Positions 1-25,879 of a DNA stretch of 26,259 nucleotides are shown here, in pieces; positions within the stretch are counted from its first letter, which is position 1, and each line of letters starts with the position of its first letter. The stretch comes from Paraphysomonas bandaiensis (lineage: Eukaryota > Protista > Chrysophyceae). The notes under the pieces are model-generated. The model did not search any database and was not told the origin of the DNA. It worked only from the letters and a program-made list of their open reading frames with translations. The position numbers were made by a program, and so were the translations under genes. The DNA lies in the NCBI GenBank assembly GCA_965644295.1, contig CBFFRP010000511.1, forward strand, positions 1 to 26,259, given 5' to 3'.

Positions 1-1
1 C

Positions 2-163
2 CCGTACTTCACCTTCTTCCGGAAAGACCGCGGAATCTCCAGAATAGACCACATTCTACATACACCTCTTCCCACATACATACAAATTTCTGGCAACGGG
101 TGCTACACCTCGGACGCCATCACGGCAGCAACCTTTGACCACAGACCGGTCTGGACCGACCTC
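2..163 (+). pseudogene. C-terminal part of apurinic-type endonuclease (APE) domain of LINE A
   Basis: Frame +2 (absent from ORF track) reads PYFTFFRKDRGISRIDHILH...TFDHRPVWTDL, matching APE motifs SRID-IL and (S)DH-PV. Confidence 0.85.
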
Positions 164-1250
164 TGCATCAGTGGAACAGGACCCCCCCTGCCGAAGGAGC
201 AACACCTTCAGATCCCGCCAAGGCTTAACATCAATCCCGCCGATCAGGAAATGGTGGAGGAAAATACCAACAGCATCTCAGCACACATCATCAATCCCTC
301 CCGGAGCCCTCGGCACACCCACACCCTGCCGACCGCGCCGCCACCAAACTAGCACTAATCCATCGCATCACCATTGACGCGGCTCACGACACATGTAGCG
401 CAGATAGAACGAAGAAAACACGCATTCACCACCTCTGCCAACGCAAACGTTCCCGCTTCAAAGACGGCTTTTCTGCGGAAATGAGAGTTATTCAAACAGC
501 GCTCCACTTAGTCATCTACCTAAAGAGAAAGTTTTTCAACAGAGCCGGCTATCTCCACCCTCATGTAGATGACACACGTCTCTACAGTCTTACACGAAGA
601 GGCCTCCAGCGGTGGGAGGTCACCATAGCCGCCCTGGACCACGCTTCAGAGGACCCATCCCACCCACCCACCACCATCATCAAGCCTGCCGTGGATCCAC
701 GCCAGATGCTGACATGGACTGTTGCGACCATCAATAGCACACAGTTTGACACCCTACGGGATAACCTTACCCGAATGCTCCAAGGAAGAGCAAGAACAGA
801 AATGCGGAAGCGTATGACCCACAGGACCCACACCATCCAAGCCCACCTGGAACTCCAACACATCGGAAAAGTCCTTCAGACAATAGGATTGAAGCGCAAA
901 CAGACGCCACCCCTCACCCGACTCACCCTAGAGGACGGAGCCACCCTAACCCTCCCCATAGACATACAGGACGAGCTGAACAAACATTTCACAGCCCACC
1001 ACTCCATCCCATCCGGACTTGATCCAGTCGCCCACAAGCTACATCATGACGACACCTGGTGGCACGAGCTCGCAGCTGGCGCCGACATGAACACACCCTT
1101 GCATCCACATTCCGCCATTCCCGATCACCACCAGCTTGGCCTACGAAACTTATGCAAAACAAAGGTTACCTCCGCCACAGCTAAAATGATCCAAAAGACG
1201 CTCTACAACAGCAGATCACAATAAGCGAGTTCCACTCCACCCTGGACGGG

Positions 1251-2696
1251 ATGGCCAAGGATAAAGCGCCCGGACCATCCATGGTCACCACCAACATGAT
1301 AAAGAAATGGACCCCTGAAATAAAGATTGAAGTCCTAGGCCTCCTCCAAACCCTCTGGACCCATCGCCATGTGCCACGCTGGTGGAGAGACAGAGTCATG
1401 ACGCCACTTCTTAAAAAACCAGGACACACGTCTCTAAAGAACCTCCGACCGATAGGGCTCCTAGAGGTTTTGCGCAAACTAATGACCCGTATCATCACCC
1501 ACCGGCTCCTCCACATATGGGAAGAAGATGAAGTACTGCACCCTGCGCAACACGGCTATCGATGGCGACACGGCACGGACACGGCCATTCTACGAGTCCT
1601 CGCGGCCACGGAACTGGCCAAACTTACCGGGCATGTGAAACTCTGCACCTTCTGGGATTTTCAAAAGGCCTTCGACTCCATCGCACCCAATCTTCTCAAA
1701 TTAGCATGGGCACGACTTGGTGTCCCCGATGACACTATCAAATGGCTAAGCGATCTCGACGATGGGGGTCGCACCTTCATCTGGACCCCACACATGGCCG
1801 ACAACATCGATCCCCGATCACTCGAAGAACTGCTTGGCTCAGATGACTCCTTTATCCAGCACCCTGATATGGGATTCTCCGCGGAGAGAGGGGTCACACA
1901 AGGTGGAACTGAATCCACAGTTGCATGGATTGTCATCTTTGACATGATCCTATGCTGGTCTGACCTACATGATGATAGCCAAGATGAGGCGTACGCAGAT
2001 GACCTCTCCCAAATCACAACTTCCATTGAGGCCACTCAGCTCAAGGCCGACAAACTCTCATCCTTCTGCGCCTTCTCCGGAATGCAACTAAACATCCCCA
2101 AAACTGAATGCATTGCCCTGGGAGCCCCATTTGCGGTGACGGCCATGTTAGAATCAAACCCACACAACATCATAAGAGACTGGAACTGGTGCCCACACCC
2201 CATCCCCATCCAAACAACCACCAATTCCACCAAGTATCTCGGCGTACAACTTCCATTCTCCGTAAAGGACACTGACTCCCACAGCTGGTGCACCACCTAC
2301 ATAGCCACATCCACGGCAGTTCTACGATCCAAATGCGCGACACCTGACTGCAAGCTACTCGTCCTCAACACACAAATACTCCCGACCCTACTATACAAGG
2401 CCACCAAAGCATCCTGGACATATGCTAAATACATCGCCATACACAAACTACTCGCGCAGGCCGCTAGGAAAATACTCCGTCTCCCCCCTGGATATCCCAC
2501 GGATCTTATCTACCTTCCCCCGAAATACAAAGAGCTTGGACTGCGCAAATTTTCAACCCACGCTCAGACTCAGAAATGGCATACTCTTCAACGAGCCCTC
2601 ACACTCGGAGGACAGCCCAGAGTGCGGCCATATCGCTCTTGCAACGCTACGAGCACCCCCCCCAGCAGGACGTTGACACGTACATCACCAGTCTAA
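1251..2696 (+). pseudogene. LINE reverse transcriptase domain (frameshifted fragment of ORF2)
   Basis: KAPGP, NLRPIGLLE, QHGYR, DFQKAFDSI, GVTQGG, YADD, LNIPKT and KYLGV motifs. The upstream ORF 481-1224 is the APE-RT linker in another frame. Confidence 0.93.
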
Positions 2697-3334
2697 TACA
2701 ATGGGGGCAACAACTACGCATCAGAATACAACCTCCCTCCCCAGCTACGCCACAATTCCGAGCTACTATTGACAAAGTCCAATCACAGCTACAACTGTAC
2801 AATGATCACAAATATGCTTACAAAGCCATCTTCACGGATGGATCCTTCACACGCACACACCTCACCCCTGCTCACCTACTCGGCAACACCCACACACAGC
2901 CCAATTCTCACGACGGAGGAGCTGCAATTGTATGGCTCCCGCCCAAGAACACCTGGGGTCACAGACAAACCAAAATCCTACTACTTACGGCACCACAGCA
3001 CACAGCGCCTGGCCTCAACGCATACACCTACGAAACCCTTGCAATATCAGCAGCACTGACATTCTCCAATGTACTCCACTCTTCCGTGCCAATCTGGACT
3101 GACTGCCAGGCGGTACAGACGCGGACCAAAGAGGCCCTCTCACACAGACGGCGCGCCCTCGGAACAAAGCCCCAGGGAATATTTTACGAATGCCTCGCCA
3201 CCACAGCTCTTAAACAGCGTCCAATAAAATGGACGCGCTCGCACCCCGAACGTAGAACACAAGTTCAAAGCAACTGGACCTACTACACTGACCACGGCAT
3301 TTATATAGCTGACGCCGCCGCCAGCGGCGATTAG
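2576..3334 (+). pseudogene. RNase H domain of LINE A ORF2 (frameshifted fragment)
   Basis: IFTDGS, GGAAIV, NAYTYETLAI, IWTDCQ, WTRSHPE and IADAAA give the RNase HI catalytic pattern D-E-D-H-D. Confidence 0.85.
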
Positions 3335-3715
3335 AAGACACTAGACAAAGTGCTCGGAGCCTCCAACTACAGTGTTGTCACAACTGTGACGCTACGCACA
3401 TACTGGAAGAATTCTTCACCACGGGTCAATGGCACTGGCGTAGATACGATACACACCTCCTCACAGACCTCGGTCCTATGCTAGGAGACGTTACAGATCT
3501 CCACCACACCAGTGGGACCTCCATCAATACACCTTCCGACGAGATAGCATGTATGCTGCACAAACGCAACGAGACCCGCAGTATTGGACACGCAGCGGAA
3601 CAAGGCTCCCACACAAGCTCCATCCCCTCCGTACCCATAACTCCTCCAAACACTACATCTCCCTCTCGCAGAGCGTATACGCGAGACGGCATACGTATGG
3701 GACAAATCCTTTGCA

Positions 3716-4495
3716 ATGGGTAGAAACCGAGCCAAAGGAAAATCCGGACATGATCGCACAACGGCTTCCACATGCGCAGACTGTGCACACCCCACAGACA
3801 ACATGGCGCACATGCTTCTCACCTGCACTCACCCTGACATCTTTCACATACGTGAAGATGTCCACCAAGCACACCACAATAAGCTTGACAAACTTCGCAC
3901 ACGCACGCTCCCCCATCCCTGGTTTTACACCGCCATAACCAAACTAGCCAAAGCCGCATGGAACCCAACCACCCCCCAGGTTGAGCGCTACTGGACCGGC
4001 CACATTACTGCCACACAATTGGCCGACACATTCGGACGTCACATATCCAACTCACTGCTCGAACATCAGTTCCACGCCCTCGAAAAATCCATCGCCTCTA
4101 TCCTACTCCCCCTATATGATGGAGGGCTCCGCATGCTTCGCAATAGGGGATTCAGACACCACAACGCAGACACGGCACCGGCGACACCGGTCACGACACA
4201 TTCACAGCAACGCCAGTCCCAAGATACTCACCCGACACCAAAAATACTCCAACTACTCCAGGCGACATCCACTCCAAGAACTACACTCTCTGCAAGAGCC
4301 CAGACCCGACAGAGGCAAGCGCAACCACTCCGGAAACAACTCCTCCTTACTTGTGGCCGAAACCCCACCTCAACAACCAGCACCATCTCCACCACCGACT
4401 TGCACTCTCATATACATCTCGCCTCACCCACCCCCCACATAATCCATGGCACAGGCCCGCCAGACACATTGCCCAAAGGTAGACCCCCCGACTAA
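3716..4495 (+). pseudogene. C-terminal zinc-knuckle region and low-complexity tail of LINE A ORF2, ending PKGRPPD-stop
   Basis: CADC-x8-H-x4-C pattern. Clear homology to ORF 4874-5710 (GRNRAK, AWNP..PQVER.WTG). Confidence 0.8.
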
Positions 4496-4506
4496 CCTCA
4501 CTACAA

Positions 4507-4551
4507 GGGACGGTTGCACCATGGTGCTCGCAGCGATGCACAAGCAGTCCC
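4507..4551 (+). other. Conserved structured RNA motif in LINE 3' UTR (copy A)
   Basis: GGGAC...GTCCC outer stem enclosing GCAC-CATG-GTGC and GCA-GCGA-TGC hairpins; homologous to 11137, 20711 and 25034. Confidence 0.75.
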
Positions 4552-4739
4552 GAGACGGTTGCCCGCCACTAGTAGTATATAGCAAATCTAGTTATTAGCT
4601 AGTCTATAGACACAAACTAGTTTCTGTACGCAACCGTACTCATGTAATAATCAGACTTTCATATATCCCCATATAGTTAATTCTAGTAGTGGTTTCCCAG
4701 CCATAAATAGCTCGTTTTCTACTTCCAGAAATAATCATA

Positions 4740-5707
4740 TAGAAATCAACGGACGCTGGAGGCCTACACAGCTCACCGAGACCTGACCGGGCTCCTGAAT
4801 ACTGGAAAGACAGCGGAGCACTACTTCCGCGCAAACTGGCGCAAGCAGATGGTGGACCCTCAAAGGACAAAAAGTGAGTTCCCACCTGCGCCAGCGAGAA
4901 CTCAATGCAGCACTGACATGTTGGGACAAATCCTACAGCATAGGAAGAAACCGGGCGAAAACCAAACACGGACTCGACATGGCTAAAGCCGCATGTTCTG
5001 ACTGCGGATTTAGACTAGACTCACTCAAGCATATGTGTCTAGACTGTCCAAATGACAACATAATGCAGATAAGGGAGTCTGCATTTCACAGCCACAAAAA
5101 CGCGCTTCTAGAAGAAATGAGAAATCCGGAACTACCCCAATGGATCACCACTGTACTCCAGCGACTCTCCAGCAGGGCCTGGAACCCTTCCGTGCCACAG
5201 GTGGAAAGATTCTGGACGGGTACCATCACAACTACTCAGCTTGAAATGGTTTTTGGAGATCACATCCATGAGTCACTGACATCCCAAGGACTGCGCAGCA
5301 TCAAATCAGCGATCATCAAATTACTTCTACCGCTTTTCGCTGCAGCAAAACTAATGATCCAAGATCGAGGTAGAAGATACGTTACCCTACAGAAAGGTCC
5401 CCCAAGGCTACTACCGCGGCCGCATCCAAAACATAGACAGAAACGAAAACACCCAAGGGTGCTAAGATTACTAGGAATCCACAGACGAACCGAGACTAGA
5501 ACACCGCCCACCGCACCTATGAACCTTACCAACCATACGCAAAGGACCATAGCACCGGACCGTATGACACCAACAGGCCCTAGACAACGGCGACGACGTC
5601 TCCGGCAACTCCACCTATGCCCAACGCCCAGACGGTGCATGGCGACACCGCCACATTCCACCACACCATCAACCTCTCAGTGCACACATCTAGTGCTCGG
5701 TACGCTC
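4740..5707 (+). mobile_element. 5'-truncated LINE of a related family (copy B), left part, interrupted by the copia insertion
   Basis: Encodes PEYWKDSGALLPRKL...GRNRAK...CSDC-x8-H-x4-C...AWNPSVPQVERFWTG, homologous to LINE A 3550-4150. The stop at 5710 is supplied by the LTR. 5' boundary is approximate. Confidence 0.85.
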
Positions 5708-6000
5708 TAACAGAAGTTGACATTATTTGCTAAGGTTTTCTATTCTCAACTGATAAGATGAAATTATAAACATTACATGATAAAGAACCTAAGTTGTGTT
5801 CGATGTGTTCAACACCATTCATTTACTACTATAGTGTACAAACCACCCACTCAGTGATCGTATCCTGTATAGTCATCCACTTCTACTTCAGTTTCATACT
5901 ACATAATATAATGTACTAATTACATATATATCTTTCGATCCTTGCATCTCACATAATACTGCACTCAATTGCAAGTATATAGAATCTTCAGATCTCAACA
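5708..6000 (-). repeat. 3' LTR of copia element
   Basis: Identical to 10708-11000 by visual comparison. On the minus strand it starts TGTTGAGA and ends TTCTGTTA. Confidence 0.97.
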
Positions 6001-6009
6001 CTCCCCCTC
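6001..6009 (-). other. Polypurine tract (GAGGGGGAG)
   Basis: Purine run directly abutting the TG of the 3' LTR on the minus strand. Confidence 0.93.
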
Positions 6010-6125
6010 AATTGAGTGTTGTACTTATGACGCCTCCCAGCTATTGAATGCCTGAGATAAAAAAATTCTTGACAGTAAAATAGACTCATCTCTAAGTCTA
6101 AACCTCTGTCTAAAAAACTCAGTAC

Positions 6126-8519
6126 CTACTTGCGCCTTCTTTTATCCCTTGGTCCCTCATTAATCACTTCAGTGGAACTCTTAACTTTCTCTCCAAGATT
6201 TCTCTTTCTCTGATCCATATATGATAAACCAACCAATGACTTTGTATAAATATCTGCTGCTTGTTGCGATGTATGCACATGCACTAACTTAATCGTATTG
6301 AACTGATTGGGATCCACGTGCTCTCTCACCATGTGATACTTAATCTCAATGTGCTTCGACTTCTTGTGAAACACTGGGTTTTCGGCCAAATCCTGGGCAC
6401 TCTGACTGTCGATGAAGAATGGTGTGGGTTTGATGAGCCTCAACTTAATCTCACCCGTCACCCCCCGAACCCATAGCACTTCTTGGAGACCCGAGTAAAT
6501 ACACTGATACTCAGACTGCATGCTTGACGTTGCCACTGTCGTCTGCAGTTTGGACTGCCAGGCTATAGGCCCTCCCGCTGCAAACCCAACGTACCCCGAC
6601 GTGGACTTCCTGGAGAGCTGATCTCCCGCCCAATCCGCGTCAGTAAACATATGGAAGTCGAACCGTCTACTCCCATATTGAATCCCTTTGTCAATAGAAC
6701 CACGAATATATTGCCATACATGTGTTAATAGCTTGCATACTTCAATATTCACCTTATTACTGAACCGAGACAGTACTCCCACTGCATAGGCAATATCCGG
6801 CCTCGTGTTCATCGATAGATATAGTAATGCACCTATCAGCGGCCGATATGGGAAGTTATCTACTATAAGCTGTTCCTCCTCGGTATGCTCATGCCGCGCC
6901 CCTTTTGCCACTAAATCCATTGCTTCCGCCGGTAGAGGACTCTTCCGTACCTTTCGCGGTGACCCAAGATACTTTTCAAACTTTTCTAAGATCTTAGCCG
7001 CATATACTGATTGGTCAAGACGAATATACTCTGGCGTTCTTGTGACTCGAACATTCAGAAAATGTTCCATCTCGCCCATATCCTTCATATCAAACCGGGC
7101 ACACAGTTGAGCTTTAATATCCTTCACTATGTTGACATCACGACCTAACACTAGGATATCATCCACATATATCGTTAATAATATCAATTCATCGCCCTTA
7201 TACTGATAATACAAACACGGGTCTAATACACATGGTTTAAAATGCATAGATCGTATGAATTTATCCAATGTTTTCCACCACGACCGCGGGGAACTCCGAA
7301 GCCCGTATAACGACTTCTTCAGCTTAAAGCAGTACCCCTCAGGCAGCTGAAAGTCCGGAGTTGCCTTCATATATACGTCCCCCTCTATATCTGCATATAG
7401 AAATGCGTTAGACACATCCAGTTGATGAATTACCATGTTCATCACGAAAGCTATGGTGATTAACAGTCGCACTGTTACCCCCTTAACAACGGGTGCGAAA
7501 TGGTTCGCCCAACCACTCGACTGCTGTCCACAACCGATTGCTACAAGACGAGCCTTATATCGGCGGACCTCTCCCTCCTTATCGTACTTCTTTCCATAGA
7601 CGTACTTGGAGTGCAGTGGGACGACTCCGTCCGGTATACGAGTCACCTCCATGGTATCTCGCTTCGCCAAACCCTCTCGCTCTACACGGCGAGCTCGTCT
7701 CCACTCCCTGTGCTCGGCACTCTCCAAGGACTCACGATGTGTCTGAGGCACTGTCGACTCTTCCGCTGACATCCACACTGAGTCTGCCTCCTGTAAAAGG
7801 TCACTCACATCACTCTCATCACTCAAATGATGGATTTGTCCTAACACCGACACATTCGTTACCGTCCTTGGAGTTCTTGCGCGTTTGCCGTGCGGATGAT
7901 TCTCGGCAGGGGTCCCTTCCCCCGAAGGTAATGCTGAGTCAGCCTGGGGCTGCACCTGCCCACTTTCCGACTGCTGTGGCACCACTCCGCTGATACCGCC
8001 GTCACGGTTGTCAGTAACTCTGGCCCTAACCACCCTCTGCGCAAGATCCTCTGTCATCTTCTTGATGTCAGCAATATGAATAGGAGTTTTATCCTCCACT
8101 TGAACCTGGTTACCAGTAACCAACGACCGGTATCCCACAATAAGTCCCTTCCTTATCACCACTCTGTTAGTCTTGTATAGCAGACCACCATCCTCATGGT
8201 GCTTTCCGATAAGATACTCAAACTCACCCGGTTGACGAGCCTCGGGATCTATAGCCACTTGAGCCTCCTCCAGCTCTCTATAATAATCCTGAGACCTCTC
8301 AGGTACCGATTCATCAAATAATACATGTACAGAGTGTACTACGGTGTCCCCCACTAGCACCTTGTATCCTTTTCGATCAGCTGGATACCCTATGAAATAA
8401 CCTGTCATTGCTTTGTCCTCCCAGTCCTTCCTCCTGTCGGCCTTGGGTGTTAGCACATATGCTTTGCACCCCCATTTCCGTAGCCACGATAGGCTGGGAA
8501 CGCTCCCCCTGGGACACAC
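6126..8519 (-). CDS. Copia pol: integrase C-terminus, reverse transcriptase and RNase H
   Basis: LRKWGCKAYV...GYFIGY, RYKARLVA, QLDVSNAFL, KSLYGLR, IYVDDIL, TRPDIAYAV, TDADWAG, KSKHIEIKYH. It continues the upstream ORF across a frameshift near 8505-8509. Confidence 0.95.
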   Translation of the reverse strand: MCPRGSVPSLSWLRKWGCKAYVLTPKADRRKDWEDKAMTGYFIGYPADRKGYKVLVGDTVVHSVHVLFDESVPERSQDYYRELEEAQVAIDPEARQPGEFEYLIGKHHEDGGLLYKTNRVVIRKGLIVGYRSLVTGNQVQVEDKTPIHIADIKKMTEDLAQRVVRARVTDNRDGGISGVVPQQSESGQVQPQADSALPSGEGTPAENHPHGKRARTPRTVTNVSVLGQIHHLSDESDVSDLLQEADSVWMSAEESTVPQTHRESLESAEHREWRRARRVEREGLAKRDTMEVTRIPDGVVPLHSKYVYGKKYDKEGEVRRYKARLVAIGCGQQSSGWANHFAPVVKGVTVRLLITIAFVMNMVIHQLDVSNAFLYADIEGDVYMKATPDFQLPEGYCFKLKKSLYGLRSSPRSWWKTLDKFIRSMHFKPCVLDPCLYYQYKGDELILLTIYVDDILVLGRDVNIVKDIKAQLCARFDMKDMGEMEHFLNVRVTRTPEYIRLDQSVYAAKILEKFEKYLGSPRKVRKSPLPAEAMDLVAKGARHEHTEEEQLIVDNFPYRPLIGALLYLSMNTRPDIAYAVGVLSRFSNKVNIEVCKLLTHVWQYIRGSIDKGIQYGSRRFDFHMFTDADWAGDQLSRKSTSGYVGFAAGGPIAWQSKLQTTVATSSMQSEYQCIYSGLQEVLWVRGVTGEIKLRLIKPTPFFIDSQSAQDLAENPVFHKKSKHIEIKYHMVREHVDPNQFNTIKLVHVHTSQQAADIYTKSLVGLSYMDQRKRNLGEKVKSSTEVINEGPRDKRRRK

Positions 8520-10723
8520 TCATATGGAGACATCCATCCTTGCCACGTCCGAGTTGGCATTCGTCGCACAATGTAACATGCAGTTTGATAAGCATCAAAC
8601 CAGAACGACTTTGGAAGTCCAGATGCCGTCAACATCGTCAGTGTCATCTCCCCAATTGTTCGGAATTTCCTCTCAGACACCGCGTTGAGCTCTGGCGTGT
8701 CTCGTGTTGTATGTGACACCCGAGTCCCATATCGCTGCAACAGATACTCTCTTATCTGCTGACTAATAAGTTCGGATCCTCCATCGGCATGATACTCCAC
8801 TATACGGTTCCACCCCTCGTACTTCACTAAGTGGACCTCGCACAAGTGTCGTAGACATTTGAACACCTCCTCTCCGCTTCGAGTCCTCAATCCATATTCC
8901 CATATCATCTTTGTTGCTAAGTCCGTAAATAGGAGCACGTACTTATACCCTTGTCTGGATTCACAATTGAGATAGACGGAGATGTCCGCTGTTACTCTTT
9001 CCAGGAACCTGACTGCGCTTAGCTCTTCGTTGTCCCGTGATTTGAACGAATGCCTGGTTATCTTCGCCTTGGCACACCATTTACACAGGGGTTTCTTGCA
9101 ACTCTTCTCCTTTGCCTTCGAAAGGTGATGTCGTTGTAGTCCTGATCCTCTGAATAACATGTGTCGGTGAGCTTCTATTAACTTCGATTTCGAGACATGT
9201 CCAGTACGCTCATGTAAGCGATCCAACGCATCTTGTCCTGTATTATCCGACAAATTTACCTCCTCTATCTGATTGCACATAGACACATTTGGCAGATTTA
9301 ACACCTCCATCAAGTCCACATACGGCATCCCTCCATGCTCATCGTACTCTCCAGTCAACACCTCGTTTCCAGAGTCCAATTCCACGATTTTAGGCTTTCG
9401 AAGCAGTTGTAATCCGTATCCCATTGATCTCAGCATCCCTCCTGACACAATGTTCTTCACCGCTTCTTCACTAACTCTGATGTCTCTCCATTCCCCGAAT
9501 GTACCAGTTCCCTGTGTCTCCAATTGAGAACCCTTTCTAGTTAGTTGGATTGCCCCAAACTCAGGAGTAAATGACTCCAGTGCAATTTTATCCTTTACTA
9601 TAAACAGTCTTTTACTTGCACAACTGTCCAGATATACACGAGGTTCTTCCGACGTATCCACCGATAGCAAAACCTCTTCTCCAAACAAATTCGCTTCATC
9701 ATCCGACGACTCTCCGTCGTTGACGTATTTCTTCCATTCTGTCTCGAATTTCCTGTTCGATTTTCGAGGATTCTCATTATCCGGGTTTTTTATGTTCTTC
9801 CGTTTTTTCGACTTGCACTGTCGGGCTTTGTGACTAAAATCTCCACAGATATGACAACCAGTATAATCCTTTGATCCTGGCTGCTGCACACTCTTCGAAG
9901 CCTTTTCCTTTGTCTTCCCTTTTCTTTTGAACTTGTCCATTTTTCTTTGTCGTTCCTTAGCATAACAATTCGCTGCTACATGTCCCTTCTTCCGACAAAA
10001 TGAACAAACCACTGGCTCCTTCGACGCCGTAAAATTGATCTCTTCAGATTTGTCTCCCTTTAGTTTCTTCAGCTGCGTCATAGCCTCGTCATACTCTTCA
10101 CAAGCCTCTTTCACCGAATCAAATGTAGTTGTTGCTTTAGGCATCATCGCTACCGACATCCATAAATCATGTAATTCCTCTATCTGCAGCGCTGCTTTTA
10201 TCTTTGCTAATTTACTTGCCTCTGTCTGCGGTTGTCCCAATTTTATGAGCTTCTGGATTATACCGTTCAGTCGATCTACCCCAACAGACACCTTTTCCCC
10301 CGGCCTTATTTTGAACGAATGGTATTCTGCCGTAGTCTTCTCCAATACAGTCCCAATCTCGCCTCTGAACCTATCAACCAGTGTCTGAAGGAGCTCACTG
10401 GATAACACCTCCTTAGCAGGATCATCAGCAGGTAAAATTGCCTTCCCCTCCAAATATTGATTGGCTACCTCCAACACATCAGGGTCATGCTCGCAAGCCT
10501 CCCAAATAGTACTAACACAGGTATCATTACGCTCTCTCCATGACTCTAAATTCCTTCCTCCGGCTGGCGGGTCCTCCAAGCCAAGATGGTTTCGGTTTTT
10601 CTTCATTAGATGCATCTTGATTTTTCTCGCTGAATAGTCTGCTTGGTTCTTGTCAAACCGTAGCTTCTTGTCATCTTCCCCATCCCTACAACTATCACTC
10701 GCTACCATAACAGAAGTTGACAT
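8450..10723 (-). CDS. Copia gag-protease-integrase (likely start ATG at 10708 or 10723)
   Basis: Two CCHC knuckles (CSFCRKKGHVAANC, CHICGDFSHKARQC), protease YLDSCAS, integrase HHCC (HERTGH...CKWC) and core D..D..E (TADI, HADGGSE, NAVSERK). Confidence 0.95.
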   Translation of the reverse strand: MSTSVMVASDSCRDGEDDKKLRFDKNQADYSARKIKMHLMKKNRNHLGLEDPPAGGRNLESWRERNDTCVSTIWEACEHDPDVLEVANQYLEGKAILPADDPAKEVLSSELLQTLVDRFRGEIGTVLEKTTAEYHSFKIRPGEKVSVGVDRLNGIIQKLIKLGQPQTEASKLAKIKAALQIEELHDLWMSVAMMPKATTTFDSVKEACEEYDEAMTQLKKLKGDKSEEINFTASKEPVVCSFCRKKGHVAANCYAKERQRKMDKFKRKGKTKEKASKSVQQPGSKDYTGCHICGDFSHKARQCKSKKRKNIKNPDNENPRKSNRKFETEWKKYVNDGESSDDEANLFGEEVLLSVDTSEEPRVYLDSCASKRLFIVKDKIALESFTPEFGAIQLTRKGSQLETQGTGTFGEWRDIRVSEEAVKNIVSGGMLRSMGYGLQLLRKPKIVELDSGNEVLTGEYDEHGGMPYVDLMEVLNLPNVSMCNQIEEVNLSDNTGQDALDRLHERTGHVSKSKLIEAHRHMLFRGSGLQRHHLSKAKEKSCKKPLCKWCAKAKITRHSFKSRDNEELSAVRFLERVTADISVYLNCESRQGYKYVLLFTDLATKMIWEYGLRTRSGEEVFKCLRHLCEVHLVKYEGWNRIVEYHADGGSELISQQIREYLLQRYGTRVSHTTRDTPELNAVSERKFRTIGEMTLTMLTASGLPKSFWFDAYQTACYIVRRMPTRTWQGWMSPYECVPGGAFPAYRGYGNGGAKHMC
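10698..10707 (-). other. Primer-binding site TGGTAGCGAG (probably initiator tRNA-Met)
   Basis: Immediately follows the 5' LTR. The first 8 nt equal the yeast Ty1 tRNAi-Met PBS (TGGTAGCG-CC). Confidence 0.85.
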
Positions 10724-11000
10724 TATTTGCTAAGGTTTTCTATTCTCAACTGATAAGATGAAATTATAAACATTACATGATAAAGAACCTAAGTTGTGTT
10801 CGATGTGTTCAACACCATTCATTTACTACTATAGTGTACAAACCACCCACTCAGTGATCGTATCCTGTATAGTCATCCACTTCTACTTCAGTTTCATACT
10901 ACATAATATAATGTACTAATTACATATATATCTTTCGATCCTTGCATCTCACATAATACTGCACTCAATTGCAAGTATATAGAATCTTCAGATCTCAACA
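10708..11000 (-). repeat. 5' LTR of copia element
   Basis: Identical to 5708-6000; PBS on the inner side and TSD CGCTC on the outer side. Confidence 0.97.
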
Positions 11001-11005
11001 CGCTC

Positions 11006-11319
11006 AGGACCTTAATACAGAACCCTGTACCTCAGAGCCAGGCGGAACCTTATCCCAAGGGGAGACCCCCGGACAACACGCGCCAGTGAGTCCTCAGACA
11101 CACGAGCAGGGCGAACTCACACACAACATCAAGAACGGAAGTGGTTGCACCTTGGTGCTTGCGGCGACGCACAAGCAGCTTCTGTAGCGCTAAATAGTAG
11201 GATAATAGAATTTGTGCTGATTAGTTATGGGTAGAGGTCTAACTAGTAGATCTAGCATTCAACTAGCCACTGTATCGGAATGAGTTTTTAACGCCTATTG
11301 CTAAATAAAAAGACTTTCA
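11006..11319 (+). mobile_element. 3' end of LINE copy B (ORF end and 3' UTR)
   Basis: Removing the copia and one TSD restores the frame ...LGTL-RTLIQNPVPQSQAEPYPKGRPPDNTRQ-stop (TGA 11087-11089). The structured motif (11137-11183) and the terminus AATAAAAAGACTTTCA follow. Confidence 0.88.
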
Positions 11320-11776: not shown

Positions 11777-12829
11777 TTAAAACGTTTCGTGTCGATGCGT
11801 CATTTCAGCCCCTGATGACAACAAACTGTAATCGTCGGCCTGCTGCTTCCTGAGGTCTGTAATCTTGTAGATCATGTAACCAATAACTCCGACGAGCACC
11901 ACTGTTATAATGAGAAGGGTAATAAGGAGTGCCAGTTGGACCGCAAACCCATTATATGATTCGTCATCTGAGCCGCTAGAGGTACAGGAGCTACCTGAGT
12001 ATCCAGCGTTACAGTAGCAGTAAGACTTCTTGTTGACTGAGTCATAAGCGCAATGCCCATGAGAGTTGCAAAGCCCATTTTTCGTTATCGGACACTCCTA
12101 AAATATACCATGTGCGTAAGAAACACATAAATACAAATAGTCACATACCGTGGGACAACCGTGGTAGCTCTTCATTACCATGTGATACTGACATTTTTCT
12201 GGCTCCTGGGCCGATACAATAGCGGATTCCACGTTGCTACACATGAGGTCAATAGTGGCTGATCGCAACCGGCCAACGCTTTGACACTTCTCGCCCAGGG
12301 CATAGGTCATCGACACACCAACGGTAGGGTCTTTCTCGTCAATCAATTTGTAAGACAAATCATCATTACTGGGGTCGTACTTTCCAATCACATAACAGTC
12401 AGAATAAGTAGCGTACGTCATGTACTGGAGGGCAACGGCACTAGTAATTCCCTTTGATTTGCACACATCAGGAATGTATTCTGCACCAATGTTGGAACAA
12501 AAATTCCACTCATACGAAAAGCTAGGCTCTTCCTCGGGAGTACACGGAATATCTCCATCTAAGATACTGTAAGGCTTCTCTGTCTCTTTCAACGTTAATG
12601 CTTTTAAATCGTAATGAGCCCCTATGCAAATATTCAATCAGCACAAAGTATTCGAACATCAAACGAGTTAATAGCTGTACCCGTAAGGCTCTTCCATTCA
12701 CACTGTATATATATTAGTACATAAGCATTACATGTACTGCATGTAAACCCATACCGGAATATCTTTCTTGGATGCATGGACCACAACAAACAGAGGGATA
12801 AAGAGTTGACGAAATCCTGAAAAAAACAT
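11777..12829 (-). CDS. Type I membrane protein: signal peptide, mannose-6-phosphate-receptor-homology (MRH/ATG27-like) domain, EGF-like domain, TM helix, YxxL tail; exons 12829-12755, 12702-12681, 12621-12149, 12097-11777
   Basis: Three GT-AG introns (52, 59, 51 nt) join an open frame MFFSGFRQLFIPLFVVVHA...GAHYDL...YEWNFC...GVSMTYALGEKC...EPEKCQYHMVMKSYHGCP-TECP...CNSHGHC...CYCNAGYSGSSC...LALLITLLIITVVLVGVIGYMIY...DYSLL...ETF-stop. Confidence 0.85.
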
Positions 12830-13396: not shown

Positions 13397-16300
13397 ATGG
13401 ATGCAGCAGCTGCTCATTTACTGGACTTTTCTACAGATCTGGACATTGAGCTTTTGGATCAGATCGTGTCAATAGCTTATGATCCGTCCCATCCCCAACG
13501 GGGCGCTGCTAATGATTTCTTGGTGAGAATGAAGGATCATCCTGACATGTGGAAGAGGGCGGATGGGATGTTGGAGACATCAAATAATGCTGCAACGAGG
13601 TTTTTTGGATTGCAGGTTCTTGGAGACGCTATATCAACACGATGGAAAATATTACCAACCGAGCAACGAGAGGGCATTCGCAACTATATTGTGGGTAAGA
13701 TTATAAATTTATCCAGTAGTCCCCAGCTTCAGCGAGAAAACCATTCGTTTTTGTCTCGTTTGAACTTAGTGTTAGTTAGTATACTTAAGCAGGACTGGCC
13801 TCACAATTGGCCATCGTTTATATCCGATCTAGTTGGCTCATCCAAATCGTCAGAATCATTGTGTGAAAACAATATGCAAATTTTGCAGCTTTTATCAGAA
13901 GAAGTGTTTGATTTTTCAATATACACGATGACTGCAGCCAAGACGAAAAATATGAAGGAATCATTGTATGAAGAGTTCTCACAGGTTTTCGAATTGTGCC
14001 AATTCATTCTTGACGCGTCACAGAAAAAATCTCTTTTAACTGCAACCTTGAAGACACTTCAACGTTTTTTGTCTTGGATTCCACTTGGATATATATTTGA
14101 AACAGCATTGGTTAACGGTCTGATATCGGTATATTTTCCTCAACCAGCGTACAGGTATTTTTTTCTTAGCAATATAGTATGTGCTAATTTCTCTTAATAG
14201 AACCGCTACATTGGACTGTTTAACTGAAATTGCCTCTCTCCCTCCTGCTGATATTCCTGACGCATACCATCAAACCCTACAGATGCTTCTTGTAAACTTG
14301 ATTGACAAGCTCAAGGGAATCATACCATTGGACACCAACCTCGTGCAAGCGTATGACAATGGGACTGAGGAGGACTGCCTATTCGTATCGCGGCTCGCAC
14401 TCTTTCTTGGAACATTTCTTAAAAGTTATAGCTTCTTGTTTGAGGGCTCGAGGGATGAGCCTTTGCAACAGACTATTGTAGAAGCCTTAACGTATCTGGT
14501 GATGTGCTCGGAAGTCGATGATGAGGAAATTTTTAAGACCTGTTTAGAGTTTTGGTATTCATTCACTAAGGATTTACACTCGTCGGAAGATGCGCGGACA
14601 CGCTCTCATAATGCTGTGGGAAACATCTTGGGAGGAACTCTCTATGGCACGTCACAAACTCATACAAGTAAGGTTGCAGTGTACGGAAATATTCTGCACC
14701 GCCTACGGCACGTTATTATCGACAAGATGGCGAAACCTGAGGAAGTTATCGTCGTAGAGGATGAGAACGGAGATATTGTGCGCGAGATGACGAAAGACAC
14801 AGAGGTCATTGCTCAGTACAAGACAATGCGGGATGCTATTGTTTACTTAACCCATCTGAACTATGAAGATACGGAGGCCATTATGTTGGGTAAGCTAGAG
14901 CAACAGGTGGATGGAGGCATGTTTTCGTGGCAAGGGCTTAATACTTTGTGCTGGGCAATAGGGTCAATATCTGGTGCTATGGGTGAATCTGATGAGAAGC
15001 GATTTCTTGTGACAGTGATAAAGGACCTACTGCGACTTTGTGAAGAGCAACGAGGGAAAGATAATAAAGCTGTGGTGGCTTCTAATATTATGTATATTGT
15101 CGGTCAGTATCCGCGCTTTTTGCGGGCTCACTGGAAGTTTTTGAAGACTGTGGTAAATAAGCTGTTCGAATTCATGCACGAACACCATCCTGGAGTACAA
15201 GACATGGCGTGTGACACGTTCTTTAAAATTGCGCAGACGTGCAAGCGAAAATTTATGACCGTTCAAGTAGAGGACGACGTTATAGAACCTTTCATTCTCA
15301 CACTCATTGCTGATTTATACAAACATATTGCCGACCTGCAGCCCCATCAGGTGCAGGCATTTTACGAAGCTGTTGCATGCATGTTATCTGATCGCGGACG
15401 TGGTATTCGTATTAATCGTCAAGAAGTTATTGTGAAGCTCATGAAGCTTCCGAATTCCTCGTGGCAGGAGATTATGAACCAGGGAGGACAAGATGTTGAC
15501 AGTATGCTCCAACTAGACGTCGTGAAAGAACTTTCCAAGATTCTCAGAACCAACACCAAAGTATGCAGCGCTGCAGGATCCATTTATATTCACCAACTAT
15601 CGAATATTTTTCTCGACATGTTGAATGTATACCGCCTTTACAGTGAACGGATTTCTGAAGCCGTTCAGAAGCAAGGTGAAGTTGTGACAAGGTATACACT
15701 CTTCAAATCAATGCGTGGTGTGAAATCAGAGATTCTAGACCTTGTAACCACCTTCATTGAAACTTGCCCAGAGCTTGAAAATGGCCCGCAAGTTATTATG
15801 ACTACATTCATTCCAGCGCTTATGGTTGAAGTGTTATGTGATTATCAGAAAGCTGTTCCTTCAGCGAGAGATGCTAGAGTTCTTACGTTATTTGCAACAG
15901 CGATATCCAATCTTCGGGAACATATATCACAAGATGTTCCTCGTATCATGGAGGCCATCTTTGAACCAACCCTTGAAATGATCACGAAAAATATGATGGA
16001 TTACCCGGAGCACAGAATGGGGTTCTTCAAGTTTTTGCGAGAGGCAAACGAGCACTGTTTTTTCGGTCTCTTCAGTATTCCCCCACAACAACAGAAGTTA
16101 GTTGTTGATAGCATCGTGTGGGCATTCAAACACACGGAGAGAAATATATCTGAGACAGGTCTAGAGATACTACACGAGCTTCTGCAAAATGTAGGTCGCA
16201 CTAATGAACTCGCCCAGCCCTTTTATCAACAATTCCTGCTTCCTCTTACTCAAGATATACTGGGTATTATGACGGATAGGCTTCACAAAAGTGGCTTCAA

Positions 16301-16727
16301 GCTACAAGCGACTGTTCTGCAGCATATATGTTGTTTATTGGAGAAGGATCGTGCTGTTGCTCCTCTCTATGATCCTCAGGCGGATAATCATGCGCCTAGT
16401 CAAAAGGATGGATCGACAGACAACAAACAGTTCGTGATGGAATATATTGCCTGTCTTCTCACATCATCATTTCCAAATATGACGAAAACTCAGGTAATTG
16501 CCTTTGTGAAAGGTCTATTTAAAGTCTCTCACGACCTTGTGGCGTTTAAGCAACATCTCCGTGACTTCTTGGTAACAGTGAAGGAGTTTGAGGCTGAAGA
16601 TAACTCAGAACTTTATATTGAAGAAGTGGAAGGTGGTGCCGAGATGTTACGGCAGCAGCAGTGGGAGTACAGAGCCTCTGTGCCAGGTCTTCTCTCTCCC
16701 CAGGAGATTTTTGAATCTAATATGTAG
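13397..16727 (+). CDS. XPO1: Exportin-1 (CRM1); exons 13397-14154 and 14201-16727, about 1094 aa
   Basis: LLDFS..LDI.LLD N-terminus, KQDWPHNWPSFI, LCENNM.IL.LLSEEVFDFS, MAKPEEVIVVEDENG, DLLRLCEEQRGKDNKAVVASNIMYIVGQYPRFLRAHWKFLKTVVNKLFEFMHE, C-terminal VPGLL.P. A 46-nt GT-AG intron (14155-14200) restores the frame (YR|TATLDCLTEI). Confidence 0.98.
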
Positions 16728-19790: not shown

Positions 19791-20446
19791 TCTTCATAAA
19801 CGCTTCATGTAGGAAGTACTACATGTGCATTCACATTCATGCGGTTGGAAGAGGCCTATTGCGGCAAGAGTTCAATTCGCTCCAACTTTATGGTTCCCGG
19901 AAAGCTTTGAATTCCAGTGACGCCAGGCTTCTCCAGACATTTGGACTGTTCTGTCGCTGGTTTCACACAGGAGCGCCAGGTGGCTGTGGAAGAGCAGCCG
20001 GGGATGAAACACATGGTATTATGTGGAGCCGTATGAGGGGGGTTCAGACTTCTGCCTTCTCATCAAGAGCACCACGGCATATTTCCATGAGAAGGGCTGG
20101 ATCACCCCCGCCCGCGAATACTAATATTTGTAGTAGTTTATATGTTTATATCATGTAAACGATGTGTGAACTGCACACCTTTACACCTGCCATATGTGAA
20201 CAACTACACACCACATTTTTCTCCTATAAGAGTACTCATTATAAATATCTCCTATACTCATTATTAATTTCTTTTAATACTTGAATCGTATTTCCACTAC
20301 TACTTACCAGGGTTGCGAAAAAAATAATTGGTGAGATGCAAACACTACCCAAGAATTCAATTATTGTCGTAGGTATTAATTGCCTTCTATTCTAGTGCTT
20401 GATTTTAACATAGCATTCACTACTTACTTCTGCTAGCTACCTTCGC

Positions 20447-20865
20447 CCTCAAAAAAGTCTGAATCGCACCTTTTATTCTGAGTTCTCCGGGAAACTAACG
20501 TGAGCCCCATATATAGTAAGCAGATATTGTTCTGCCCACTCATAGCAGAATGTTTGTGTGATACACGGGACAAAATAAGTGTCACTTCTCGTATAAATGT
20601 CTTTGGGCCTTGACTATTAAACAGGAATGGGCCCACCTCAAGAGTATCTGGGGTATTGGACTGCATACTGAAGCCATGCATCCGGGCTATTCACCTTAAG
20701 GACAGAGAGGGAAAGTGGCTGCACCATGGTGCTTGTGGTGACGCACAAGCAGCTTTCGTAGCGCCAAATAATAGGATATCTTAGTTAAGCACTAGTTAAT
20801 TATATTGCTTGGCTACATTAGTGCTGACTCTTACACGCCTACTGCTAATAATCAAACATTCACTA
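20447..20865 (+). mobile_element. Short retroposed insert (copy C) carrying the LINE 3' motif and terminus
   Basis: Motif at 20711-20757; terminus CGCCTACTGCTAATAATCAAACATTCA; flanking direct repeat CTAGCTAC(C/T)TTCGC (20433-20446, 20866-20879). Confidence 0.7.
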
Positions 20866-21781
20866 CTAGCTACTTTCGCAAGAACTATCTACTGAATTGA
20901 TCCGAAGTCACCAATCAGCATCGTCTGAACACTGGCCAGTGGATAGTCCCTTTCCAGCGCTTACAGTGCATTCCAACACGCGCTTCGTCGACCAATGTGT
21001 CAAATATAGTGATATATATTCTTTTACCATTACTAACATCACCATCACTATCTGAAATGTCGGAATTGCTGCCCATATGATTGCATAGGTGTCAACCTCT
21101 AGTATTGAGGTAGGTGCATTGCTTTGGATTAATAGGAACGTAATGATGATATCATACAAAATTCATACACAATTATGAGTGCACAGTATCTACAGAGCTA
21201 CATTCTACAAACATACAGGCTGTGTAGAGTCACGTGGTGTTTGTATTCCAGGTGATACACACAGTCATGTGTGCAGCATAGAGTCTTAAATATCGGGCTA
21301 CATTCAATGTTTTGAGGGAATTAGGTCTCGGATTCGAGTCCAGCACTATTGAATTAGTACAGAATGCTGTTTGTGTCCTCAGAGTCACATGGTGTGTTGA
21401 TGTATCGTGTAGAGTGTGTGAAGGACTGTCATCAGTGGAGTGAGGAGGGTCATGAAAACCGGCACTGATAGGATCCTAAAAAAAAAGATAACTGAAAAAC
21501 CCCTTAAGGGCACTCACTTTGGACATGAGGCCGTTCCTTAGGACATGTCAAAATCAAAAAAATGGTATTATTTTGACAGTGGGGTGCGTTTTGCCATTCC
21601 TTAGGACAGTCAAAAATCAAAATAATGGCAAAATATTATTTTGACACCCGGCTCGCATCAAAATAATGGTCACTATTTTGACGCCAGAGAAGGAATGTCA
21701 AAATAGTTGACCTCGCGTCAAAATAGTTGATAAGGCCATTATAACCACAATAAGTCATCTTTTAGACAGAAGTAACACACG

Positions 21782-22871
21782 ATGAGCACCAGTGTGATCA
21801 AAGTGAACACCCCAAGCGTGTTCACGCTTGTTTCGAACCTAATAACAGTTGAAGCGGCGCTGGAGACCGTGGCTGAGAAGGAAGGAAACCAATCCTTCTT
21901 GGATCTAAAGGAAGAAATGGAAAAGACTCAGAGGAGCGATGCAGAATGAGGACATCCCTTTATGGAATGCCCTTGCCCAAAAGAACTCCGGCATTAATAT
22001 CGATGAAATGCTTCTTCTGTTCAGACAGAAGAAGTATTTGGAGGCTGCCTCTGCAAAGCAAAACAAGAACAGAGTGATTCAAGATGATGATGAAGCGGTT
22101 GGTGATGAAGACTATGTAAATGAAGCGGTTGGTGATGTGAATGACGACGGGAATGTTGATGCTGCTTCAGTGGATCAAGATGATCGTGAAGATAAATCAC
22201 CTGATTCTACTGCTCTGACAGAGCCCAGTGCTTCAAACCTTATGACAAAACGAGAAATAGAGAAATGCCAATTGCTGAAGAACTTCCCACCTGATTACAT
22301 GCATCAAACATATCTGGCATTTATAAAACTAGGTCCGCCGGCTGCACCATTTGATTCACCAGTCCTTCGTGGCGAATTAAGCTGTGGACCGAAGAAAAAG
22401 TTGGGCACTCTGTCCTCTGATAGTTTAATGATTAAGGCTTGCGATCTATCGAAGCCCGCGGATCGAAGCACGCCATTAAGCAGAGCAGATGCACGAAATC
22501 AGCACAGAATGGAAGAAGAATTCGCCATCGAAAAGAAGAGAACTAAAAAATTCTTGGTTGCGCAACAGGAGAGTAACAAATTGGAATCCTACGTCATTGA
22601 CTTGGAATGCTATCGTCAGAAAATCGAAGACTTTGAGAAGAAAATTGCATTGCATGAGGCCTTAGGAGACAAAGACTCAGCAAATCGTATTCGTTAAGAA
22701 TTGTTGTCGTATTATGAAAACAACAGTATGCCATCCAAACCCACGCTTGTTGATCTCACTGCTGAAGATAATAGCGATGACGATGGTAACCCGCATCATC
22801 CAATGAAGAAGAAGCGTATTAACCCTTTCCAGACACCATCTCCTAAAGATGAAAGCCCGTCTAATGTATGA
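21782..22871 (+). pseudogene. Harbinger accessory (probably Myb/SANT-like) gene, disrupted
   Basis: ATG at 21782, frame break near 21908, then RKKWKRLRGAMQNEDIPLWN (resembles the last SANT helix). After an in-frame TAA at 22695-22697 the frame stays open to TGA 22869-22871. Confidence 0.6.
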
Positions 22872-23122
22872 TCTTTTCGTTGTGTGCTTTACAGTTATTG
22901 CTATTAAGCTAACACTACTTATTAAACAAGCACAACTGTCTTTTTATTTCTTGCATACATTTATTCTTCTGCTACTAGCATATTACAGTCTCCAGTCTGC
23001 AGCTAAGTTCATTTTACAGTCTCTACAGTAGTCTCTAGGTAAGATTGCATACTTTCTTAGCTACAGTATGTGAGCTCACAATGGGTGGGATCTTAAATTT
23101 TAATTACTTAACATATAGCAAG

Positions 23123-23760
23123 CTATAACCAAATCAATTCACGCTTCCTTCTGGCAACAGAATGATGAACAATAAGGTCACGACGTAGCTCATAGTGTGT
23201 AGTCTGCACTTCTTCTTCGATATGATCTGCAATAAAAGGACGCAACATAGTTCCTTCTGCGACAGGTGTATTACCATTTCTTGCGCGATTCATTGCTCTG
23301 GTTTCCATTACTCTGCGCTGAGTACCATCGTACAGGTCATCGTACTCGTCATCTGGGTTTGATTCATTCCAGTCATACGCCTCTTCCCACCTCTTATCAT
23401 ATCCATCATAACTCAGCAATATGTTATGCAGAATGCAACTTGTAAAGAAGACATTATCAATTTGGTCTTTGCTATGAAGTTCAATTGCATTGCACAAAAG
23501 ACGAAATCGCTTCTTCAAAATGCCGAATACATCTTCAACATCTTTACGCACAGACTCTAAATTGCAGCTCCAGCTTGCCGTCTTCTCGCAACTGGTATGT
23601 CTTACGGTTCCTGTTTTTAAATCTCCTCTCTCTCCGAAGTTTACTCTTGATCTTCTTCGTAGGATGAAACCACTCCAGCATAATCTTACTGCAGCGTCGT
23701 CTCCTCTTCATACGTTCGAAAGCATTGAACAAACGTGTCATGTTATTCCTGTCTCCCACT
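23123..23760 (-). pseudogene. Harbinger DDE transposase remnant (N-terminus fused out of frame to C-terminus)
   Basis: WSCNLESVRKDVEDVFGILKKRFRLL...FFTSCILHNILL...LRRDLIVH is the PIF/Harbinger C-terminal signature. The central catalytic region is missing, with the junction near 23575. Confidence 0.88.
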
Positions 23761-24165
23761 GCTCATAATAATGACACTATATATGTCACATTAAATGACA
23801 ACACTGCTTGATTTGAACATTTGAATTCAACCCAGGCTATACAGGTGTATACGTGGCCGTATATACTATTTTGATGCGAGATGTCCTAAGGAATGGCACA
23901 TCAAAAGTCAAAATCCACCGAAATCCACAAAAATATTGATTTCACATCAAAATAATTATTTTGATTTTGACATGTCCTAAGGAACGGCCTGAATAACTCG
24001 AGATCCAAATTATGAATCAAGCTGGTCAATTATAATGCATCTCACACAAAATCATTCCACATCTGATGACGTATTTGCTAACGTCATCGCCACTCTGTGA
24101 CTGAAACTGTGATTGACTGAAAACACCTAAAAAACCGGCATTAGTGGGGACCCTACTTCCTACTG

Positions 24166-24267
24166 CTGTTGGACACATCACCATGTCCATGTACCTGTAT
24201 ACCTGTACTGTTGGACACATCACCATGTCCATGTACCTGTATACCTGTACTGTTGGACACATCACCA
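24166..24267. repeat. 42-bp tandem repeat, about 2.4 copies
   Basis: CTGTTGGACACATCACCATGTCCATGTACCTGTATACCTGTA at 24166 and 24208, partial at 24250. Confidence 0.95.
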
Positions 24268-24936
24268 GCTCTCTCTCTCTGTCCAACACACTCATAACAC
24301 CACTGCAGTGTCATACACACACACAGTGCACTCTACCTCCTCCTAGAAAACCCCCAGACAAACTATCTCCTCTCCCTTCGTCTCTGATACCTTGCAATCA
24401 TCTTCCTTCCACACACTCTCTATGCCTCAGTCTGTACCCCCCTGCACCAACACAGACACTAACAAGGGCAGCTGAGGACGTCCGAGTGTCTCCTCCAGAC
24501 CATCATCATCATCACGATCATCTCGTGCATAGGTCTATCAGAGTACTCGACCTCAGTGACTCTTGTTCTGTTGCGCAGTCTCACTCTCCTCAATCAGATG
24601 TTGCCTCTCTTGCACCATCACACTCCCTCTCGACTCCCTGTAGCTGGACACACCGGATGACCCTCACATCCCACCCCTGTACAGCTATACACCCTCTTGC
24701 ATGTGTTCTCTACCGCTGGCTAAGACAGCAAAAGAGCCGATTTCGACGCTTCTTCACAGTAGGCCATAACCTTTTGCAAGACCTTCATCCATATACCTCC
24801 GAGCCACTTGGAACAATGCCTAAAGGAAGGCCACCAGATCGCCAATCTCAGAAGGGCATATTACTGTTTCCCCTAACTGCCATAAGGCTAATAAGTCAGT
24901 CCCCGTGAGGTACATAAGGCTATCTATCATATAGCG

Positions 24937-25215
24937 AGTGGAGTCTCATCCCAAGAGGAGACCTCCAGATCACACGCGCCGGTGAGTCCCAGGACACACG
25001 ATCATGGCGAGCCTCATAACACACACTAAGAACGGAAGTGGTTGCACCTTGGTGCTTGCGGCGACGCACAAGCAGCTTCTGTAGCGTTAAATAGTAGGCT
25101 AAAAGAGTTTGTATTGATTAGTTACGGGTAGTAGTCTAACTAGTATGACTAGCATTCTTCTAGCCACTAATTGGTGCAGGCTTTCAACGCCTATTGCTAA
25201 ATAATCAGACATTCA
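24937..25215 (+). mobile_element. Severely 5'-truncated LINE (copy D), same family as copy B
   Basis: Collinear with 11041-11319: HPKRRPPDHTRR-stop, motif 25034-25080 identical to copy B, terminus CGCCTATTGCTAAATAATCAGACATTCA. Confidence 0.88.
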
Positions 25216-25879
25216 ATATATGTATTTATGTATGTGAGAGTCCCCATAAAAAGTTTAGGTGTGAGTGTGATGTCATTGGAGATATTTTATCGAGGTAAAG
25301 GCTTTGTATAGATGTTGACTATATATATATGCCTCGTAATATACGTTCATTACAGACTTAATATATATTACTCCTATTTCAAGAACCATTGTGACAACTG
25401 TGTGTCTAAGGATTGTGGAGGGGTGTGGGCAGAAGCTGATATGTGTAGAATAAGTTCTCAAGGCAATGGAGAACAAACTATCTGCTCGTAGCGGTGATAA
25501 GGTATAAAAGTGCTGAGTAGCAACTGTATGAGTGCTGATGAAATTGTACCACAGGAGTTTCAGCTTGGTGTTTTGGAGACGAAACCTCCTCAGCTAGGTT
25601 GTAAAGCGCTTTCGTACTATGACAGAGGGACGTATGAGGTTGAGTTCGATGTCGACGGCGATATTCAACAATCTTGCGGCACCAGTTGCGATGTCGAGGT
25701 GGTATGGCACGGATGACCATCAACCGCCTTTCACTTATATAGAATATAGCAACCAGAGGATAAAATATAGAGTCCAGTAGTGGTAGTGGTATCAAAACCA
25801 CAAGGAGGAAAAGCAAGGAAACACTACAAAGGTATGTGTGATGCTTGTAACTACATACCTACCTCTGTGCATACCTACG

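Follow-up and report, generated by a model that had tools for sequence, protein, structure and literature searches.

A 45-nt three-way-junction RNA motif that keeps its base pairing while its sequence changes in the 3' tails of LINE-type elements from Paraphysomonas bandaiensis

The window, by which we mean the whole 26,259-nt stretch of Paraphysomonas bandaiensis DNA that was analysed, begins with two successive LINEs (LINE A and LINE B), followed by two protein-coding regions and two further element tails (C and D). Sequencing runs that contain this DNA are of marine origin. LINE B is 5'-truncated, begins just after A and is split at 5707/11002 by a Copia/Ty1-type LTR retrotransposon (5708-11001, coding on the - strand). 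The insertion of the Copia element looks very recent: its 294-nt LTRs are 100% identical, its gag-int and RT ORFs are long and open (757 and 797 aa) and a target-site duplication, (C)GCTC, is present. Downstream of LINE B lie a glucosidase-II-beta-like ORF on the - strand (12098-12637) and a CRM1/exportin-1 gene on the + strand (13397-16727), the latter reading as two overlapping ORFs in different frames (13397-14197 and 14181-16727), with a change of frame at ~14181-14197 that may reflect a short intron, frameshift or sequencing error. Beside tail C, a very high-copy short repeat (20484-20563) reaches ~300 times the single-copy depth and is entered by ~70 contigs at 20483/20484. Further along, some contigs lack 2,464 nt and join 21525 directly to 23990; they come from both organism runs, a metagenome and a poly(A) RNA run. 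Because DNA runs are among these, the skipped segment (21526-23989) would seem to be an inserted element that is polymorphic for presence or absence, and not an intron; it contains an ORF (21939-22697) and, close to its ends, short inverted or direct repeats. Tail D adjoins a ~0.8-kb non-coding segment (24160-24935) that opens with a 42-nt tandem repeat (24166-24291; two perfect units and one diverged). The segment is a repeat too, at 20-300 times the depth of single-copy sequence, and contigs from an RNA library lie on it.

A motif of about 45 nt had been described from the letters of this DNA at four places, some 105-135 nt before the 3' ends of "divergent LINE-type elements". All four copies are present there (Table 1), and the ends of the elements (A 4661, B 11319, C 20862, D 25215) lie 110, 136, 105 and 135 nt past the motif. 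These ends were set by a shared terminal box (...GAYWTTCA) together with the point at which other contigs leave the sequence (25215-25218). The box belongs to a second conserved block, TAATAATCAGAYWTTCA, found at the very 3' end of the A, B, C and D tails and of a distant relative (L009:8107-8125); it carries a signal-like hexamer, AAUAA(A/U), ~12 nt before the end, and poly(A) is absent. The description as LINEs stands for A and B, the only two copies with LINE coding sequence upstream in tblastx searches, and not for C and D, upstream of which (from ~20672 and ~24935, respectively) tblastx found none. Tail D does retain the last ~12 codons of ORF2, whose peptide ends in ...GRPPD in A, in ...GRPPDNTRQ in B and similarly in D. 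C and D are either 5'-truncated copies or non-autonomous derivatives.

Table 1. Motif copies, terminal boxes and associated features of the LINE-type elements in the window.
Feature	Position	Strand	Basis or remark
LINE A	1-4661	+	APE-type endonuclease and RVT_1 reverse transcriptase, broken frames
C-terminal ORF of LINE A	3716-4495	+	contains CCHC-like motif
Copy A, three-way junction	4507-4551	+	sequence, folds, alignment
Second UTR domain, A-type elements	4552-4641	+	RNAalifold; both strands changed together in L016
3'-terminal box TAATAATCAGACTTTCA, end of element A	4645-4661	+	end set by analogy with D; no poly(A)
Copy B (P1 CGGAAGU/GCUUCUG)	11136-11184	+	tail of 5'-truncated LINE split by Copia insertion
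3'-terminal box of B, TAAATAAAAAGACTTTCA	11302-11319	+	sequence
Copy C (P1 GAAAGU/GCUUUC, P1b GCU/AGC, P3 GUG-GUGA-CGC)	20711-20757	+	tail ~190 nt, 20672-20862
3'-terminal box of C, TAATAATCAAACATTCA	20846-20862	+	sequence
Copy D (B-type)	25033-25081	+	tail 24935-25215; block common to other genomic families ~25036-25098
3'-terminal box of D, TAAATAATCAGACATTCA	25198-25215	+	contigs of other insertions diverge after 25215-25218

The motif is the sole well-conserved island of these tails. A degenerate pattern of its 33-nt core matched four times on the + strand of the window against 0.00 expected (100 shuffles), and a repeat search recovered a 36-nt core at 83-89% identity across the four copies. 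B and D belong to a single family, with 89% identity over 146 nt; across families, identity is 67-87% in the motif and 30-50% in the MAFFT-aligned flanks, which agrees with the earlier remark that the flanks align poorly. The adjacent C-terminal coding sequences of A and B share just 36-58% amino-acid identity.

RNAalifold and single-sequence folds agree on a junction of three helical arms. In copy A the outer helix P1 (4507-4511/4547-4551) is followed by a 3-bp helix, P1b (4513-4515/4543-4545; GUU/AGC), which is absent from the preliminary description, with the opposed bulges G4512 and A4546 between the two. P2 (4516-4520/4523-4527, loop AU) stacks directly on P1b, and only the two central bases of its loop vary among copies (AU, UU, AA, UC). 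The strand UC (4528-4529; UY in general) leads to P3 (4530-4532/4537-4539), which is capped by the GNRA loop GCGA (4533-4536), and ACA (4540-4542) closes the junction; across copies the P3 loop reads GCGA, GUGA or GCAA, with GACC in L009. The three outer stems reported before (GGGAC/GUCCC in A, GGAAG/CUUCU in B and D, GAAAG/CUUUC in C) are as claimed, as are the hairpin GCAC-CWUG-GUGC and the GNRA hairpin in all four copies of the window. An extended hairpin, UGCUY-P3-AC-AAGCA, was rejected: one-sided changes at columns 51/52 break it and keep P1b, and it leaves C-A mismatches in 5 of the 13 copies aligned.

Nine further copies were identified in public contigs, every one in the 3' UTR of a related LINE. 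The RT ORF and the two C-terminal ORFs (of A and B) served as queries in word searches, which turned up a few relatives in marine metagenomes and one JGI sample; the closest named relative of the C-terminal ORF, and the only one named, is a transcript from Paraphysomonas, a chrysophyte. Every related-LINE contig that reaches past the ORF carries the motif on the sense strand of its 3' UTR. The motif-bearing contigs are A-like (L014, L015, L022), B-like (L023, L025) or belong to a family with 52% amino-acid identity to A (L016 and L017/L018), and they include L019 (63% identity over part of the ORF) and the distant L009. Two RT-ORF relatives (L012, L013) end 24 nt short of the motif and L021 ends ahead of it, while L020, which lacks it, diverges ~30 nt before the end of the ORF through an insertion or a chimera. 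A covariance model trained on 11 copies found its best non-training match at L009:7911-7976, a weak one (13.8 bits, E 0.14-0.22 over 46-71 kb) that is marginal by E-value alone. The match has the expected orientation and falls within the 3' UTR of a full-length LINE, upstream of the recognisable terminal box, and the minimum-free-energy fold of this sequence (RNAfold) independently yields the same three-helix junction. L009 and LINE A share 43% amino-acid identity in the RT and 22% in the C-terminus, where a CCHC-like motif is common to both. Across all copies the motif lies 105-158 nt from the 3' end (105-136 nt for those in the window).

Broader scans returned little. In a metagenome scan the pattern GCACCNTGGTGCN{8,18}GCACAAGCAG, whose fixed T left out the CAAG-loop variants, gave eight chance-like matches, none with a GNRA hairpin or an outer stem; a genome-contig collection gave one chance match, in a Flavobacteriales MAG, and a viral-contig collection gave none. 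One RNA contig ends at window position 25057, inside motif D, and short-read contigs in public collections tend to break off at the motif or inside it, which is consistent with an assembly-breaking repeat common to several families.

Over the 13 copies, standard pairs fill 94.7% of the cells of the paired columns; sliding the 3' partners by 1-3 columns lowers this to 34-43%. Changes on both sides were seen in six pairs, and none of 500 shuffles matched the observed covariation score. Four of these double changes (12-57, 13-56, 14-55, 39-44) fall on the branch between the A and B clades, a fifth (11-58) is seen in C and L019, and the sixth (17-52) is a flip from G-C to C-G in L009; the alignment is shallow, with 13 copies from ~6 lineages and 4/6 double changes on one branch, so that independent events are few. 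One-sided changes that keep the pairing were found at 15-54, 18-51 (three times), 17-52, 13-56, 23-31 and 38-45. About ten changes break a pair, almost all of them singletons in low-coverage contigs (L014, L015, L019, L022, L023, L025), as would be expected if these are dead copies. P2 is nearly invariant and never co-varies, and so neither supports nor contradicts the fold. By folding energy the motif does not stand out from its shuffles (z -0.3 to -1.2), a score that is uninformative for a short, G+C-rich RNA of this kind. The conserved U-G pairs (columns 15-54 and 18-51), which would be A-C mismatches on the other strand, place the structure on the sense RNA strand. The base pairing of the 45-nt junction is retained through changes of sequence, and the earlier proposal of a selected RNA structure with compensatory changes holds on these copies.

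To see how common the tails are, Logan contigs from two runs of the organism, a metagenome and a poly(A) metatranscriptome were aligned to 20400-25300 at no less than 80% likeness. Thousands of contigs pile onto the LINE tails, and in the bin of motif D the summed depth is ~2,000 times that of single-copy bins, a figure that is not a copy number, and 4.5 and 23 times that of the neighbouring tail bins. Contigs of other families join at 25029-25036 and depart at 25098; from these entry and exit points, the block common to the families is ~63 nt long and comprises the junction and GUAGCGYUAAAUAGUAGG. The commonest consensus upstream of it resembles L019. Among the listed variants at a share of at least 5%, the sole one within the motif is the loop base 20726 (A to T, which turns CAUG into CUUG), and this is suggestive; ~94% of the depth on C reads T there. 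No SINE heads (tRNA, 5S, 7SL) were found in the context of the C and D tails. These tails carry no LINE coding sequence and are very abundant, and may simply be 5'-truncated LINE copies.

The tail of A-type elements holds a second domain that bears on a proposed alternative pairing of the motif. Directly 3' of the junction, GAGACGGUUGC (4552-4562) is a near repeat of the 5' strand of P1/P1b, and RNAalifold places it in a long-range helix with GCAACCGUACUC (4630-4641) that closes the domain. In L016 the helix is formed by GAGACAACUG and CAAGUUCUCUC, both strands differing from A, and the motif strand is unable to pair with the downstream sequence; the downstream complement co-varies with the repeat. 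The preliminary description had suggested that the 5' strand of the motif could pair downstream instead, hinting at a switch or pseudoknot. The sequence complement is indeed present in A. It is not conserved as a partner of the motif, since 4630-4641 partners the repeat GAGACGGTTGC (4552-4562) and the tail of C is without the 8-mer complement; in B and D the 8-mer complement relies on two G-U pairs, and a tail of ~130 nt would be expected to hold such a match by chance. The complementarity in A therefore appears to be a side effect of the repeat at 4552-4562 and not a conserved switch, and the co-variation in L016 with the repeat, not with the motif, speaks against the switch or pseudoknot.

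To our knowledge, structural detail on how a LINE protein chooses its own RNA exists for very few elements (R2, L1 and, by genetics, fish L2), and there is almost nothing for protists. Of the three functions proposed earlier (recognition by the RT, dimerisation and 3' processing), recognition fits the present data best, and we think it probable, on balance, that the motif is the cis-acting recognition module of a stringent-type LINE, within an APE-type LINE superfamily of a marine stramenopile. The position, strand, conservation and compensatory pairing of the motif and the abundance of the tails were observed directly, and from them we infer protein binding and a role in reverse transcription. 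Invariant junction and bulge bases, co-varying helices, a variable loop and presence on all families and on coding-less tails make up the pattern expected of a recognition site. The ORF2 protein would bind the junction by reading its invariant junction and bulge nucleotides and its three-helix shape, leaving the helix sequences free to co-vary. In this way the RNA would be chosen as the template of target-primed reverse transcription (TPRT), which would start 105-158 nt downstream, at the terminal box (...AAUAAUCAGAYWUUCA). Precedents exist in other LINEs: the ORF2 protein of the L2-clade element ZfL2 binds its cognate 3' stem-loop (PMC4176376), the UnaL2 hairpin is needed for mobilisation (PMC1636434), the 3' UTRs of stringent-type LINEs are essential and are borrowed by SINEs (PMC3747384), and R2Bm recognises a ~40-nt core of its 3' UTR through short stems and invariant single-stranded junction bases (PMC10499050).

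The structure may instead be selected for some other RNA step, such as stability, nuclear export, 3'-end formation with the AAUAA-containing box, or a stop-proximal hold on the nascent ORF2 protein for cis-preference; we consider this unlikely, but not so unlikely as to be set aside. In A, P1 begins 11 nt past the ORF2 stop codon (4493-4495), and the gap is 11-13 nt throughout the A-type and L016-type elements; this proximity, the hexamer ~12 nt before the end and the alignment of poly(A)-selected metatranscriptome contigs to tail D would all suit such a role. The spacing from stop to motif varies, however, to ~47 nt in B and D (the stop of B falling at ~11087-11089 after removal of the Copia element together with the target-site duplication), ~146 nt in L019 and ~250 nt in L009, and the motif is kept on the short, ORF-less tails C and D.

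That the block lacks a function of its own and spread by recent template switching or recombination from one LINE family to another, its likeness being that of recent common descent, seems improbable to us. Families do converge sharply on the ~63-nt block between unrelated flanks, and P2 and the junction, being almost invariant, yield no covariation signal. P1, however, is wholly different between clades yet paired in each, P3 and P1b change compatibly and L009 retains the fold at much lower sequence identity; compensatory pairs of this sort are not expected from recent exchange.

We would be surprised if the junction proved to be a small RNA of a new class in protist LINEs, one that is catalytic or that switches with a ligand or protein, acting for example by self-cleavage or self-processing of read-through transcripts, or a portable 45-nt tag that is enough to direct reverse transcription of any RNA by the LINE's protein. 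A small self-cleaving ribozyme that processes the element RNA, as in the 3'-processing function proposed earlier, is more doubtful still. Retrotransposons are known hosts of ribozymes, HDV-like in R2 and L1Tc and hammerhead in Penelope-like elements and retrozymes, and the motif is, like these, a small junction RNA with a conserved unpaired core and co-varying helices. The hammerhead is itself a three-way junction, with the core strands CUGANGA and GAAA and a UH cleavage site; no such core is present in the motif, where the aligned junction strands are 0 nt, UY and ACA and the bulges G and A, and no Rfam hammerhead model matched. No other ribozyme family of Rfam did so either, even on the isolated tails at E up to 10. 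In the genomic copies both flanks of the motif are still present, with the following 105-158 nt and the conserved terminus, so the RNA that was retrotransposed was not cut at the motif. A dimerisation (kissing-loop) signal would draw on the palindrome GCACCAUGGUGC, a perfect 12-nt palindrome in A and C, and is just as doubtful as the ribozyme, since B, D, L023 and L025 have CUUG in the loop, L016/L017 CAAG, L019 GUCG and L009 CAUUG, CAUG is confined to the A and C types, and the T at 20726 in ~94% of the depth on C shows that most genomic copies do not conserve it.

If the motif is a recognition tag, the stringent mode operates in stramenopiles, and the families offer a natural series of co-varying RNA-protein pairs for studies of specificity and possibly a compact handle for template targeting, like the R2 tag. 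The candidate recognition RNA is small (45 nt) and well delimited, is kept across LINE families whose proteins share 22-43% identity, and has apparently multiplied to a very high copy number. It also serves as a practical annotation marker for these LINEs and as a known breakpoint for short-read assemblies.

The earlier statement that the motif matches no known family was borne out, as a search of the whole window with 4227 Rfam models, ribozyme families included, gave no match at E up to 1. On the tails alone, at E up to 10, the single match was a trypanosomatid snoRNA, in A only, at 17 bits against the 40 needed, so that nothing came at or near a gathering threshold. Rfam includes an R2 element model. 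In the literature searched we found no description of a LINE 3' motif in stramenopiles or Paraphysomonas.

Two known systems come close. The 3' UTR core of R2 (the R2 tag, ~40 nt, bound by the N-terminal extension of R2Bm) is, like the present motif, a core of ~40-45 nt inside a longer 3' UTR and combines short helices with invariant single-stranded junction bases, single changes of which abolish TPRT in R2 (PMC10499050). In both cases the core is separated from the 3' end, in R2 by dispensable sequence. The topology differs, and the two share no similarity in sequence or by covariance model (no match in the Rfam search); R2 is moreover site-specific with a restriction-like endonuclease, whereas the elements described here encode an APE-type endonuclease. 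The stringent LINEs of the L2 clade, eel UnaL2 and zebrafish ZfL2-1/2, with their partner SINEs (PMC1636434; PMC4176376; PMC3747384), likewise have a conserved structured element in the 3' UTR with variable stem sequence and specific unpaired nucleotides kept, end without poly(A), and have in the tail the part most widely common among families. Their element is a single stem-loop next to the end, whereas here a three-helix junction with a GNRA hairpin lies 105-158 nt from it, a fixed 17-nt box takes the place of short tandem repeats at the terminus, the elements reside in a stramenopile protist and binding by ORF2 is putative. A recognition structure in the 3' tail of a LINE is of a known kind; a three-way junction with a GNRA arm and a fixed terminal box, in a superfamily of protist LINEs, is new.
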